Below, in pieces: positions 3,105-15,463 of a stretch of DNA of 64,000 nt (position 1 is its first letter; each line of letters begins with the position of its first letter). The stretch lies in the sequence record NC_070882.1. One strand, written 5' to 3'. Position numbers and translations under genes: made by a program. Under the pieces are notes generated by a model. That model was not told where the DNA came from. It saw only the letters and a list, made by a program, of their open reading frames with translations, and ran no database searches.

Positions 3105-6100
3105 ATGGCTACAAAAAAGACCAAGCTGCCAAAACCTGCTGGGATGAATGCCCAGAACAGAATTGGTGTACTTGACCTTAATGAGCTGGACGACCTGTTT
3201 GATGATGTCGGTGAAACCACCAAACCTGGTGATCCAGTAACCGATTTCAAATCTGGTCTGAAAGAGGGCTTCCTCGGTGGATTGAAAACCAAAGACATCG
3301 TAAGGAATTTCTTACGAAGCGCAGCGCCTGATGGTTTCGCGCGTCTTTTTGGTGCCTATGATGATGTAATGGCTTCGGTAACCGATATCAAAGATACGGT
3401 CGAGAGAGTCAATGCATCCGACCTAGATTACCTTGGTCGTAAAGCACAGGATTATCTACCCCAGTTAAAAGATCGCATTCCAAATGCCTTATACGAAAAT
3501 ATCTCTGATACGCTCACCAGAAAGGTTGAACAATATCAGTACGAAGTGGATTCCCAAAGGGACCAAATCGCTATTCGTCGTCGTCGGCAAGAAAATGATG
3601 ATGCAAATGTAATTAAAGCTGCTCTCGATCAGAATACGCTGGTAAGCAGAGAAAACTTCCAACGTAGCGAACAGGGTGCAGTTGCCCGTGCTGCTGTTGA
3701 AAGAGCAGAACGTGGAATTCGTGATAAAGTAAGTGCAGGGCGCTTTGACTTTATGTCCCGCTCGATGGGGATGGCTGTAGATAGTCTGACACGTCTTGTA
3801 GGATATAACGAACAAGTTAATTATGGAATTCAACGTAAAGGTCTTGAACTTCAATTCCGTACCTACATGGGTATTCGGGATCTTGTTAAAGTACAAGAAG
3901 CTAACCTTGAATTGCAGAATAAGGCTTATGAAGCATTAGTTCGTAATACCGGGCTACCTGACTATAAGAAAGGTAATGTTGGTGATTTAACCAGCTTCGG
4001 TTCAGGGCGCGGGCGCGGTAATATTCTCGGACGCCTAGCTGGCGGAGCTGCACAAGGCCTTCATGGTTTCTTAGGTGGTTACGGTAATAAAGTAAACGAA
4101 CGTGTTGCCAGTGGCCTGGGCGGACGTCTATCGGAGATCGTCGCTGGGTTACGCATGGGCGACATGGCTGGTTCATCCGTTTGGGATAACCGTTATAAGT
4201 TCGCTGGTCAAATCGCCGGTGAATACGGGGCAGATATCCTTAAGTCGTCTATTGTTCCATGGGCAGGTCGTAAAGTTCGTCCAACTATGGAAAAACTATC
4301 CAACCGTTTTGGTGGACGACATCATCAGGTTGGTTATGCCCTAGATAACGTTCCAGCATATTTGCAAGAGTTCGTTAATAACTATCAAAACACTTATGGT
4401 TTCCGTGGAGTTATCCGCGATGCTATTATGCCATTCGTTCCTCAGTATCACCTGAATGATCGTCTGGAAAACGGAAACTATCAAACAATTGATCAAGGCG
4501 CGGCCTTTAACCAATTGACACAGCGTAGTATCGTTGAAGTCATCCCTGGTTACTTGTCTCGTCAGCTTCAAGAATTGCGAATGATTCGTACTGGTCGCGA
4601 TGATATCGAGCGTGAAGTATTCGATATTACAACTGGTCGATTCGAAGTTCAATCGCTGTCGGACGACCGTCTTCAGAAGAAGATTATTCCAGCAGCTGCG
4701 ATTCGAAGTGCTAGTGGTGCTATTAACGACACATTGAATTTGATGGACGAAGAAGGTAAACTTTCTCCAGCTGCACGTAAGGCACTTGGGGAACGTATGC
4801 TTCGAGATGCATCTACTAACCGTAGATTCGATCCAGAAGCTTACCTTAAAGCTGGCGGTTATATGGATGGCTTAGATGCCACCACCACAGATGAAATTCA
4901 AAGGTTCTTCAAGAGTAAGTTCCAGTACGACGATAAAGGTAAAATGGCGGATAACGCTGATAACCATCGTCTACGTGATGAATACTCGCGTGCCTTCCTC
5001 GATATTCGTTCTGTAAGTCGTGACCCAGTTAAAGAAGTACATCGTCTAATTAATGCCGGTCAAACCGAGCCTCTTCGGATGCTTGGCATTATCATTACTG
5101 AACAAGGTCAAGATAGAATAAACTATAACCGTATTTGGGAAATCATGCGCTCCGGCGTGACTGATACAAACCCATGGGTTAATGGTGACTATCAACCTGA
5201 AGCTTCTGGTGATATGAATGATAAGAACTTCTTTGGTCCTGCTTACCCAGGTGCAGCTAAAGCCAATGCGCTTAATGCAATGCACCGCTTCCGGAATAAG
5301 CATGCTCCACAGGAAGATCGAATCAAGAAAGAACTATCGCGCTATAGCCGTATTGCTCAAGGTAAATTCCAGTACCTGAACAATAAACACGGTGCCGGTA
5401 TCCAAGACTTTGCTAACAACATGCGAAATGGCCAATTTGGTCCTTACGTAGCTGGTCTGCAAGGAGCTTGGAATAATGCGGGTATTATGGGTCAAGATCT
5501 CTATTCTAAGTCTCGTGCTAAGTTTGGAGAACACATGGATCAGTTCCAGAATGATCCAACCCAATATGCAATCGGTCAGAAAGATAAGATCATCGATGTG
5601 TTCACGAAGTTTAATCCAAATGAACCCATTATTAAAGGTATTGATTTTGTTCAAGGTAACCTTGTTGACTTTAATACCAAAAAGATCATCGAATCTGTAC
5701 ACGACATTACCGGTAAGGTTGTTTCTACAACTGGCATGACGGTTCTAACAGCATCTGAAGTTGCCCAAGGTCTGTTTGATAAGAAAGGAATGCGTCTTGA
5801 ATTACCTGCCTTCATGAGCAATGCAGCGGACAAAATCCGCGGTGCTCTAATGGGTGGACAAACTCCTCCGGCTCAACAGTTTGCTGAAGGTGAAAACGCA
5901 CAGCAAAAACAAGCAGCTGAAGATGATAAGCATGACTGGTATTTGGATGGTGAGCAAGAACCTACTATCTCTGCTCGTGGTCTAAAGAACGGCGAATACT
6001 TCAACGCAGATGGTGACCAGATTAATTCGATGCAAGACATCAAAGGTGATGTACTTGATAAGAATGGATCTATCATTGCAACTGCTAAGGAACTAGCTTC

Positions 6101-11923: not shown

Positions 11924-12394
11924 ATGTCTATCATTCGCAAAATCGCTCTGAAACTCCTTGGTGTTGAATCCGTACTGGAACTGGCCCGTTCTGAAATTAA
12001 AGGTAATGACCTGGCTCAGCTCGCATCGACTCTTCCGGTTGATACTCTGACCAATCTGTTGGTTGGTAAGTCCGGCGTTCGTAACTTCGCCGAACTGGCT
12101 ACCGGTTATCTGGAAGCTGAACAGTATCGTGGACAGAACCTGGAAGCTGAACTGCGTAAACTAGTTCGTAAATACACCGCTGGTGCACGCATCAATGCGT
12201 CCATTGAAAATATCGCAGTCAATGCCCTGATTGGTGGTGTGGCTGAAGTTGAAAACAGTAAGGAACGCAATATTCTGAAGCGTAAGGCCGCTGCCATGGC
12301 GACTATTCGTGCACAGATGCCGGGTATCGCTAAAGCTGACGGTAACTACGCTGTAGAACTGCTTCTGCAAATTGTTAAAGTCCGCTACTCTTAA
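11924..12394 (+). CDS. Hypothetical protein, possibly virion-associated
   Basis: ATG 11924 after AGGA; strongly expressed-type codon usage; N-terminal G-V-E motif. Confidence 0.7.
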   Translation: MSIIRKIALKLLGVESVLELARSEIKGNDLAQLASTLPVDTLTNLLVGKSGVRNFAELATGYLEAEQYRGQNLEAELRKLVRKYTAGARINASIENIAVNALIGGVAEVENSKERNILKRKAAAMATIRAQMPGIAKADGNYAVELLLQIVKVRYS

Positions 12395-12403
12395 GGTGAA
12401 CTG

Positions 12404-12985
12404 ATGAAAGGTCTGGACTGGGCTCTCAGCGTAGAGAGTCAAGATGGTGTCGCCCAACAGGTAGACGCTAGTAACGTTGAATCCGAAACCGAGGTTAAAG
12501 ATCTCGATCAAGGTAATCTGGATGTGGATAATGCTAACGCTGAATCCCAACCGGATGATGTTAAGGCTAGTACCACTGTAGACATCTCTGTTGAACAACT
12601 GGAAGATGGTCAGGTGTCTGGTAGTTCTGGTGGTAAGACGATCGATGCTTACGGTGTTGATGAACTGTCCGGCGCACCGAAGCGTATTGTAATCTCTGGT
12701 TTTGATGCTTCTACTAACAAAGCTGCTGAACCCGGTGATAACAAACTGGAACTGGTTATTCTACTTCAAAATGGAGTAATCCCAGAAGTTGGTATTAATG
12801 GGGTAACCGTAGAAGATCTACTGACAGCTTCGATCATTGTATTCGAAGGTTTCCAATCGGGTAAGTTTGCCTGTGAAGAAAATGCCAAAGCATTGTTCCA
12901 CATGAACGCTGCACGTGAACTGATTCGCGCTCGACTGGAGCGTCGTCAAGCACAAGGCACTGAAGGTACCTACGAAGGTAACTAA
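12404..12985 (+). CDS. tad1: Tad1-family immune-signal sponge with acidic N-terminal extension
   Basis: C-terminal LQNG...GVTVEDLL...FQSGKFACEENAKALFHM...RLERR...EGT aligns with the Tad1 pattern FQKG...GV..SDLL...FQAGPFSSRENACALTHV...R...R...GT. Confidence 0.75.
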   Translation: MKGLDWALSVESQDGVAQQVDASNVESETEVKDLDQGNLDVDNANAESQPDDVKASTTVDISVEQLEDGQVSGSSGGKTIDAYGVDELSGAPKRIVISGFDASTNKAAEPGDNKLELVILLQNGVIPEVGINGVTVEDLLTASIIVFEGFQSGKFACEENAKALFHMNAARELIRARLERRQAQGTEGTYEGN

Positions 12986-12992
12986 TATAAAT

Positions 12993-13016
12993 GCCTCCCT
13001 TCGGGGAGGCTTTATG
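12993..13016 (+). terminator. Hairpin terminator-like element
   Basis: GCCTCCC-TTCG-GGGAGGC-TTTATG. Confidence 0.75.
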
Positions 13017-13023
13017 TTCCATT

Positions 13024-13048
13024 AAAAAATATTTCAAATCTATATCAC
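13024..13048 (+). promoter_or_regulatory. Candidate phage early promoter
   Basis: AAAAAATATTTCAAATCTATATCAC; resembles the phiKZ early TATATTAC motif and aligns with four other copies in the window. Confidence 0.6.
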
Positions 13049-13156
13049 AGGTATGCACTAGAGATTAACATCTTGAGGGCATTACCATGTAACAGCTAAC
13101 ACAATATCCATTCGCGAGAATGACAAGTTAATTCCTTTAATTGAAGGTAGTAAAAA

Positions 13157-13651
13157 ATGAAAGAACAAAACATCGACCACAATAAACCTTATACTTACGT
13201 GGTCAGTGATTCCGAAGGCAACATGCGTGTACTGACTACTCTCGGTGACGAGCTACAAGTGCAGATCGACTATGCCGTGGGCACGGGAGGCAAAGCCAAA
13301 GTAGAACACATTGAAGAAGGTATTCGTGGCCTGTGCCATTCGTCTACCTCCACTCGTCTGCTCCGTGCAACTGTTCCAGGTTTCTACAAGATGCTTGAAG
13401 GCATCATGGGTAAGATCGGTCGTGCAATGGCCGAACCCGAGAACTGGACAACTGGTAACAATGGTCGTCTGGCCTTCCATATCGAGACTCTGTTCGGAGC
13501 CGATAAGAAGTTCTGGCCGTTGATCACCCAGAGCGTTTACGAACGTCTGCAATATGACGGTTACGTCAGCGTGGATGTACAGGTAGCGGAAGACGAAGAA
13601 CAACCTATCAAGTTGGTCACTCGCTTTGGTATTCCTGCTCGCATGGTCTAA
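13157..13651 (+). CDS. Hypothetical protein
   Basis: 164 aa, GAAGGT RBS, phage-like codon usage. Confidence 0.7.
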   Translation: MKEQNIDHNKPYTYVVSDSEGNMRVLTTLGDELQVQIDYAVGTGGKAKVEHIEEGIRGLCHSSTSTRLLRATVPGFYKMLEGIMGKIGRAMAEPENWTTGNNGRLAFHIETLFGADKKFWPLITQSVYERLQYDGYVSVDVQVAEDEEQPIKLVTRFGIPARMV

Positions 13652-14340: not shown

Positions 14341-14404
14341 TCAAATGGGGCTCTACGGAGCCCCTTTCCATCTGATTAATTTTTATGTAAATACAGGAAA
14401 CAAA

Positions 14405-15463
14405 ATGACCAAATCTGCTAGCCGCAATTTCATCGTATTGGAAGGCCCCGAGTTCTCCGGTAAATCCACTCTGCACCGTGCACTGATCGTACGACTTGAA
14501 GCCGAAGGTATCGCGCACGTAGCTCTCCGTGAGCCTGGTGGTACTGAAATGGCTGAAGAGATTCGATCGGTTCTACTGAAACATCGTGAAGAAAAAGTTG
14601 ATCCAGTTTCAGATATTTTCCTGCACATGGCATATCGCCGGCAGAACATTCAGAATATCGTCAAACCGGCACTGAGTGACGGTAAGTGGGTTGTATCTGA
14701 TCGCTTTGTTTTCTCTACTTGGTGCCTGAACGTAGCTCCTTACCTCGATACCAATCCCAATCTGGCAGATCTGTTCATGGGTGTAATGCCGCACGTTATT
14801 GGTGATGGTGTTCCTGAGCCGCTGTGCTTCTATCTGGAAACTCCTGAAGAAGTTCGGAAAGAACGGATGGTAAATAGCGGTCGTGATCTGGATCGTTACG
14901 AAGTTGACGAAGTTTACCAAACTCGTGTTAACAACGCATATGCCCAGATTAAGTTTAGTCCTTCGACTAAAGTAATTGACGGCACTGCTCCCATTGATGA
15001 ACAAGTTCAGTTCATCATTGAAACTATTCAAGCCCACGAAGCTCTGCGAGCTAAAGATGAGCTTGAAGAGAAAACCGAGAACAGCGGTCATCTTCCTCCG
15101 GAAACTGTACCTGGTGAAGAGAACGATGGCGATGTACCGCAGTCTCCTGTTGAAGAAGCACCTGTTGAACCAGTTGCCTTTGATCTGGAAGTGGCACTGG
15201 AGCAATACGCTGAAACCCAAATCATCAAAGAGGTGATCTTGGGTCGTGAAGAACTCCTGCCGTATTACAAAGATCTGGCCAAGAAGATCGTACGTAAAAT
15301 CTTTGAAAAGACCAATGACGAGACTATCTTCCATCCGGCACGTGTTGGTGAGTTGAACCGTGAAATCCACTCGCTGTTCCACTTCCATGAACGTCTGCAA
15401 GACTGGAAAGATCTGATCAACAAAGACGAGCCGGTTGAACCTGAAACCGCTGTAGCAGAATAA
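14405..15463 (+). CDS. tmk: Thymidylate kinase with C-terminal extension
   Basis: FIVLEGPEFSGKST P-loop, LREPGGT, VVSDRF motifs; ATG 14405 after AGGA; about 140 extra C-terminal residues. Confidence 0.9.
   Translation: MTKSASRNFIVLEGPEFSGKSTLHRALIVRLEAEGIAHVALREPGGTEMAEEIRSVLLKHREEKVDPVSDIFLHMAYRRQNIQNIVKPALSDGKWVVSDRFVFSTWCLNVAPYLDTNPNLADLFMGVMPHVIGDGVPEPLCFYLETPEEVRKERMVNSGRDLDRYEVDEVYQTRVNNAYAQIKFSPSTKVIDGTAPIDEQVQFIIETIQAHEALRAKDELEEKTENSGHLPPETVPGEENDGDVPQSPVEEAPVEPVAFDLEVALEQYAETQIIKEVILGREELLPYYKDLAKKIVRKIFEKTNDETIFHPARVGELNREIHSLFHFHERLQDWKDLINKDEPVEPETAVAE

Follow-up and report, generated by a model that had tools for sequence, protein, structure and literature searches.

Gene PP933_gp217 of Pseudomonas phage vB_PaeM_PS119XW (genus Pawinskivirus, 301.5 kb, record NC_070882.1), which is labelled 'hypothetical protein' in RefSeq, probably encodes, in precursor form, a Tad1-type sponge for nucleotide signals, which would be packaged in the phage head, cleaved there and ejected at infection: as a whole, this is the explanation that we favour, and we hold it with good confidence. 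The protein, gp217, would be made together with virion proteins, from the last gene of an operon resembling the gp181-gp184 operon of phage phiKZ, and an acidic leader of about 64 residues would carry it into the prohead. There, the PS119XW protein gp208 would cut it behind E64, with a second, probable cut behind E11, leaving a 129-aa Tad1 domain free in the capsid, to be ejected together with the DNA. From the onset of infection, the ejected domain would bind the gcADPR of Thoeris and probably some CBASS cyclic dinucleotides, by means of F150, N160, R177 and R181. For gp217 itself, we infer the packaging, the exact cleavage sites, the ligand range and the timing, while the head location, the cleavage, the injection and the very name Tad1 come from published work on its phiKZ orthologue, gp184. 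The gene was studied within a window of 64,000 nucleotides, whose positions correspond to those of the record minus 186000; the relevant features are collected in Table 1.

Table 1. Features of the gp217 locus, in window coordinates
Feature	Position	Strand	Basis or remarks
gp181-like tail lysin, 2264 aa	3081..9875	+	operon gene 1; matches PHIKZ181 ('tail-associated endolysin') in position and size
gp182-like virion structural protein, 658 aa	9931..11907	+	PHIKZ182, 68% identity, full length
gp183-like small protein, 156 aa	11924..12394	+	PHIKZ183, 31% identity, E 7e-7; annotated PP933_gp216
Ribosome-binding site AAGGTGA	12393..12399	+	read from sequence; overlaps stop of upstream gene
PS119XW gp217 (PP933_gp217)	12404..12985	+	193 aa and stop; orthologue of phiKZ gp184/Tad1
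Acidic disordered N-terminal leader, residues 1-64, putative propeptide/capsid-targeting part	12404..12595	+	charge, pLDDT
Candidate prohead-protease site 1, S9-V10-E11 (L-S-V-E)	12428..12436	+	S/G-x-E in register
Candidate prohead-protease site 2, S62-V63-E64	12587..12595	+	S/A/G-x-E in register
Predicted mature Tad1 domain, residues 65-193 (129 aa)	12596..12982	+	AF2 model, Foldseek, profile alignment
gcADPR/cyclic-dinucleotide pocket codons	12851..12946	+	F150 12851-53, N160 12881-83, R177 12932-34, R181 12944-46
Intrinsic-terminator-like hairpin and T-rich run	12993..13018	+	pattern scan; 7-bp stem with 6 G-C, TTCG loop

The gene is the fourth and last of four closely packed genes on the + strand. 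The first of them, coding for the tail lysin, has its RefSeq start at 3105; the gp182-like product matches phrog_3181 and phrog_20401, both described as 'virion structural protein', and RefSeq, which leaves gp217 'hypothetical', calls its neighbour gp215 'virion structural'. The gp217 ATG is the earliest start codon in its frame and lies 5 nt downstream of the AAGGTGA motif and 9 nt past the stop of the upstream gene, an arrangement which suggests that translation of the two genes is coupled. The first-pass annotation, made from the sequence alone, had placed the end of the gp182-like transcription unit at this gene, and the downstream sequence bears this out: a hairpin followed by a T-rich run begins 8 nt past the stop, and the next ORF follows only after a 171-nt gap. 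The hairpin proper (12993-13010) has a predicted folding energy of -19.9 kcal/mol (z -5.3), not equalled by any of 200 shuffled sequences; it is thus reasonable to regard hairpin and T-run as closing the four-gene unit.

Beyond the terminator, about 140 nt with no ORF (13019-13156) precede the next gene (13157-13651), whose 164-aa product matches no family. This gap could hold a phage-specific promoter; a scan for sigma-70 promoters returned fewer sites than in shuffled sequences, and is uninformative, because phages of this type use their own polymerases. Further downstream lies a thymidylate kinase gene (14345-15463 and 372 aa from the upstream ATG of the raw ORF list; RefSeq start at 14405), the product of which has an acidic, low-complexity C-terminal third, with no counterpart in ordinary thymidylate kinases. 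A six-frame HMM search of the whole 64-kb window detected no second Tad1-like gene.

The likeness of the C-terminal domain of gp217 to Tad1 is real and far above chance. The pattern already recognized in the first-pass annotation is found where it had been described (FQSGKF at residue 150, EENAKALFH at 158, R-x3-R at 177-181, GT at 185 and 188), and the profile and fold comparisons with Tad1 that had been proposed there give the same answer. A search of PDB sequences with phmmer detected CmTad1 with an E value of 1e-7 and CbTad1 at about 7e-3, while a family profile, built from 31 homologues, matched the solved Tad1 proteins (CbTad1: PDB 7UAV, 7UAW, 8SMD, 8KBE-H; CmTad1: 8KBB-D) with E values from 4e-19 to 8e-16, essentially over their whole length (residues 5-123 in CbTad1). 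In the AF2 model, the folded core spans residues 77-185 and comprises three strands (79-85, 92-98, 116-121) and two long helices (136-152, 158-183), with pLDDT of 85-94. When this model was compared by Foldseek with the PDB, the best 20 matches were all Tad1 chains, with probability 1.0 and TM scores, on the target, of 0.65-0.77, the next match having an E value of 0.17; matches in BFVD include an 'Acb2/Tad1 hairpin domain-containing protein'.

Two PHROG families match gp217: phrog_2428, a family of short, Tad1-size proteins (E 5e-20), and phrog_23843, over the full length (E 6e-78). A Pfam hmmscan of gp217 returned no family at E <=1. The PF24729 model (Acb2_Tad1_hairpin) is short (58 positions) and weak; precomputed PF24729 matches are on record for 41 of 46 gp217 homologues, one of them 99% identical. 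The NCBIfam search proposed a nitrosocyanin, scoring 22.8 bits where the cutoff is 142.85, and this match was discarded as noise from the acidic leader. With the stand-alone Tad1s, such as CbTad1, CmTad1 and the SBSphiJ7 Tad1, gp217 shares the beta-sheet, the two long helices and the pocket residues, and it is similar to CmTad1 in the C-terminal lid region (G-T-E-G-T). In contrast, stand-alone Tad1s belong to early or replication modules, while gp217 lies in a virion operon and carries a putative cleavable leader of 64 residues.

The best PDB sequence match of gp217 is chain I of 8Y6V, phiKZ gp184 (PHIKZ184), with an E value of 2e-36, or 7.8e-53 when the profile is used. By synteny the two genes are orthologues, each being the last of the gp181-gp184 operon, upstream of a thymidylate kinase cluster, and their Tad1 domains are about 55% identical. 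A considerable amount of information is available on gp184. This head protein has verified gp175 cleavage sites and is for the most part not resolved in the capsid map; it has been assigned to the inner 'vertex-binding complex' in the capsid of phiKZ, with five copies per vertex, and modelled as filling the gap between gp86 and a hexamer (Yang et al. 2024, PMC11297242). It was listed among the inner-body interactors and, when provided with a C-terminal 3xFLAG, was detected by western blot after injection into translation-blocked cells (Fossati et al. 2023, PMC10449902). Chan et al. (2025, preprint 10.1101/2025.11.23.690004) named the gene tad1, found it non-essential in phiKZ, and described the N-terminus as wedged in the capsid and the C-terminus as freed by the head protease and injected. 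A 2026 review (PMC13282480) states that phiKZ injects Tad1, blocking both CBASS and Thoeris, and cites Li et al. (Nature 2024), the preprint of which makes no mention of phiKZ.

The idea that such a protein is packaged, matured and injected, advanced in the first-pass annotation from the sequence of gp217, is therefore not new; since each of these steps has been shown experimentally for gp184, it gains support, by orthology, for gp217 as well. The supplements of PMC10449902, searched for a mapped cleavage site, give constructs and detection for gp184 and no termini, and no virion proteomics or structures of PS119XW or its close relatives were found in the literature. Several partial sequences identical to gp184 have also been deposited as Klebsiella pneumoniae, on contigs of 220-572 bp: these are most likely contamination or mislabelled reads, rather than a Klebsiella gene.

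The N-terminal portion of gp217 has the features expected from the early description of an acidic segment containing S-V-E twice: residues 1-75 include 18 D/E and only 3 K/R, for a net charge of -15, and the two motifs are found as LSVES at residue 8 and ISVEQ at residue 61. In the AF2 model, pLDDT is below 50 for residues 1-74, which are predicted to be disordered. The S/A/G-x-E motif is that of the phiKZ prohead protease, and an LSxE form is enriched among gp175 cleavage sites (PMC10449902); site 1 fits this form. PS119XW encodes a protease of the same type, gp208 (record positions 179483-180316, just upstream of the window), syntenic with phiKZ gp175 and 59% identical to it (E 2e-117).

The number of S/A/G-x-E motifs is not above chance: six are found in gp217, compared to 5.2 in shuffled sequences, and two in the leader, compared to 1.95 expected. 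The argument thus rests on their conservation in register. Among the long homologues having the region, site 1 is an in-register S/G-x-E in 24 out of 24, and site 2 an in-register S/A/G-x-E in 25 out of 25, P1 being always Glu; sequences in this alignment are 44-98% identical overall, the leader being far more divergent, with W6 and the acidic pattern maintained. gp184 has an acidic leader as well, with S/A/G-x-E at the same two positions. The location of site 2 is also suggestive: the predicted cut after E64 gives a product of 129 aa starting at Q65, which corresponds to position 70 of the family profile, and 30 of 46 representative stand-alone Tad1s start at profile positions 67-68, only 2-3 residues away. 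As judged from this alignment, cleavage after E64 would yield a protein with very nearly the extent of a stand-alone Tad1.

The two orthologues differ in length, gp217 having 193 residues and gp184 (locus L002:11662-12351) 230, 37 more. The difference is mainly seen in a beta-rich insert of about 35 residues (approximately 75-110) which, in gp184, separates the leader from the Tad1 domain, and which gp217 does not have. The insert is absent from most relatives: among the homologues examined, only a metagenomic one (P0041) shares it. When the gp184 model was compared by Foldseek with the PDB, a match was found to 8y6v_I, a mostly beta target of 34 residues, covering 34 out of 34 columns with 100% identity and a TM score of 0.84; this chain is absent from the top 50 PDB matches of the gp217 model. 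Since the match is found for gp184 only, and the N-terminus of gp184 is reported to be wedged in the capsid, we infer that the insert most likely corresponds to the 34-residue piece seen on the capsid of phiKZ (8Y6V chain I), the Foldseek output giving no residue numbers for this placement. If this reading is right, the protein of the PS119XW/PhiPA3 type would not be a component of the capsid lattice, and would enter the prohead by means of its leader, perhaps together with inner-body or scaffold proteins.

These observations bear on the possibility that gp217 is mainly a structural protein, a minor capsid component with a cementing role, in which the Tad1 fold has been co-opted and ligand sequestration is vestigial. 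The position of the gene in a virion operon and the placement of gp184 in the vertex-binding complex would agree with such a role. However, the capsid map resolves no more than 34 residues of gp184, and gp217 has neither the insert nor, in its model, any match to them; phiKZ grows without gp184 (10.1101/2025.11.23.690004), and the vertex complex of Goslar has no gp184 counterpart. Moreover, all four pocket residues are kept and three of them are invariant in the clade, which argues for selection on binding. We therefore consider a mainly structural role very improbable, and retain the packaged sponge as the better description of gp217.

In order to place gp217 within its family, the profile was searched against 1.84 billion clusters, and 5,210 family representatives were obtained at E <=1e-3. 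Among the best 150 of these, 63 have the size of stand-alone Tad1s, 63 are extended at the N-terminus (by over 30 aa, the protein ending in the Tad1 domain), 21 at the C-terminus and 3 at both ends. One N-extended representative (P0064) is found in a gp181-182-183-Tad1 operon, on a 310-kb metagenome contig (L014). In contrast, another one with an acidic leader (P0108) adjoins replication genes and not virion genes, indicating that not every extension need be related to the capsid.

Findings of this kind lend some substance to the view that gp217 is a late cytoplasmic sponge, never packaged, in which the acidic N-terminus serves as a solubility or regulatory tail, or as an appendage similar to a DNA mimic: extensions are present, and of many kinds, in about 40% of the best 150 representatives, P0108 provides an acidic one in a replication-type neighbourhood, and the insert that probably anchors gp184 to the capsid is missing from gp217. 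Against this stand the two protease-type motifs, which stay in register while the leader around them diverges, the location of site 2 at the stand-alone Tad1 boundary, the conserved operon with virion genes, and the injection of the orthologue gp184 (PMC10449902). An unpackaged gp217 is, in our opinion, unlikely, and packaging followed by ejection remains the reading that we prefer.

In 6 of the 63 N-extended proteins from the best 150, the N-terminal segment matches the Pfam family PhiKZ_MCP (PF25620), with a best E value of 1e-24; in the phiKZ major capsid protein, gp120, the aligned stretch is residues 265-331. These fusions, all metagenomic (P0154, P0152, P0112, P0138, P0115 and one more of alignment A4), may represent another way to load the sponge into the head. 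One of them (L007:10001-11455) is located on a 252-kb jumbo-phage contig, which also contains a 206-aa gene with a faint PhiKZ_MCP match. A recent survey of sponge families, covering 84 proteins, mentions neither virions nor capsids nor N-terminal extensions. In Bastillevirinae phages, stand-alone 126-aa Tad1s (L005:2366-2746 and L006:2366-2746) carry the label 'putative structural protein'; it was not taken as evidence of packaging, being apparently just a transfer by similarity, attached to Bacillus phage genes that adjoin recA-like and sigma-factor genes rather than virion genes.

The ligand pocket was mapped residue by residue, by combining HMMER alignments with the mutational data of a preprint by Li et al. 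(10.1101/2023.11.15.567273); numbering in the alignments agreed with six out of six published residues. In CbTad1, F82, N92, R109 and R113 form a pocket shared by gcADPR and 2',3'-cGAMP, and their mutation abolishes binding (10.1101/2023.11.15.567273). They align to F150, N160, R177 and R181 of gp217, respectively. The last three are invariant in the alignment of the 31 homologues (A1), while position 150 is either F or Y.

The situation is different for the second site. R90 and T97 of CbTad1, equivalent to R88 and T95 of CmTad1, bind cyclic trinucleotides by their phosphates, and contribute to hexamer formation (10.1101/2023.11.15.567273). In gp217 this Arg/Thr pair is absent, its positions being occupied by E158 (12875-77) and F165 (12896-98), and most hexamer-interface residues are also missing: K96, Q98, E99, M102, W103 and K106 of CmTad1 align to H166, N168, A169, E172, L173 and A176. 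Throughout the clade, and in phiKZ gp184 as well, E158 hardly varies, and a near-invariant Glu at the position of the Arg suggests a selected change rather than drift. With the pocket conserved and the trinucleotide positions so altered, the phiKZ-like clade looks, from its residues, like a binder of gcADPR and dinucleotides devoid of the canonical trinucleotide site, with the proviso that this site and the hexamer contacts were described in two homologues, and are perhaps not a defining feature of the Tad1 family as a whole. Phage phiKZ, which carries gp184, is still subject to the cA3-dependent NucC CBASS, and is relieved by supplying Acb2: this may be taken as an independent hint in the same direction.

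It is accordingly an evenly balanced question whether gp217, though packaged and ejected, differs from CbTad1 and CmTad1 in ligand specificity or oligomeric state, and is not a dual sponge for Thoeris and CBASS-trinucleotide signals. The replacement of the Arg/Thr pair, the six further differences at the hexamer interface, the near invariance of E158 and the sensitivity of phiKZ to NucC all speak for such a change. On the other hand, trinucleotide binding could use other residues, and the review cited above has phiKZ Tad1 blocking both CBASS and Thoeris (PMC13282480). A changed specificity would, in any case, refine the explanation of gp217 as a head-loaded sponge, and is not a true alternative to it.

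Head-loaded proteins of comparable fate are found in other systems. The internal proteins of phage T4, such as the anti-restriction protein IPI*, have a short N-terminal targeting peptide, which the prohead protease removes by cutting after a glutamate; IPI* is injected and blocks a host defence before phage genes are expressed. The comparison with gp217 is an analogy only, as protein family, protease family and defence target all differ. Closer to the present case, inner-body and ejection proteins of phiKZ (gp93, gp95, gp97 and others) are made as precursors and sent to the prohead, where gp175 cuts them at S/A/G-x-E before their ejection, and gp217 resembles them by analogy; however, they contain a helical domain (PF12699), have no sequence relation to gp217 and have no known function as ligand sponges.

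The novelty of the present observations with respect to published work on phiKZ is modest, and concerns the missing capsid wedge, the trinucleotide site missing throughout the clade, the exactness with which the cleavage boundary falls, and the repeated joining of Tad1 to head-related modules. As a more tentative proposal, which we regard as possible rather than probable, jumbo phages in general, and not phiKZ alone, might pre-load their capsids with Tad1 in a modular way, through fusions to head-targeting segments that have arisen repeatedly; the phiKZ-like clade would also have lost the cyclic-trinucleotide and hexamer site, and so have come to possess a narrower sponge for gcADPR and dinucleotides. 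Three N-terminal modules could be distinguished under this proposal: an acidic cleavable leader, found in gp217, in PhiPA3 and in many metagenomic relatives; a leader followed by a beta wedge, as in gp184; and a fragment of the major capsid protein.

A sponge delivered together with the DNA could blunt signalling by Thoeris, and by some CBASS systems, before any phage gene is expressed; in nucleus-forming phages, to our knowledge, this interval is otherwise covered by the early vesicle only. From five copies per vertex, we calculate about 55-60 gp184 copies per phiKZ virion, a small stoichiometric capacity, so that, at a similar copy number, early protection is plausible without being assured. 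For phiKZ, the principle has already been published; the analysis of gp217 indicates that a shorter and commoner architecture, without the wedge, is conserved in Pawinskivirus, in PhiPA3-like phages and in many uncultured jumbo phages, and provides a sequence-based reason to expect that packaged Tad1s of the phiKZ-like clade lack canonical cyclic-trinucleotide binding. As a practical consequence, gp217 and its equivalents in P. aeruginosa jumbo phages that are candidates for therapy become annotatable, and need no longer be listed as 'hypothetical'.
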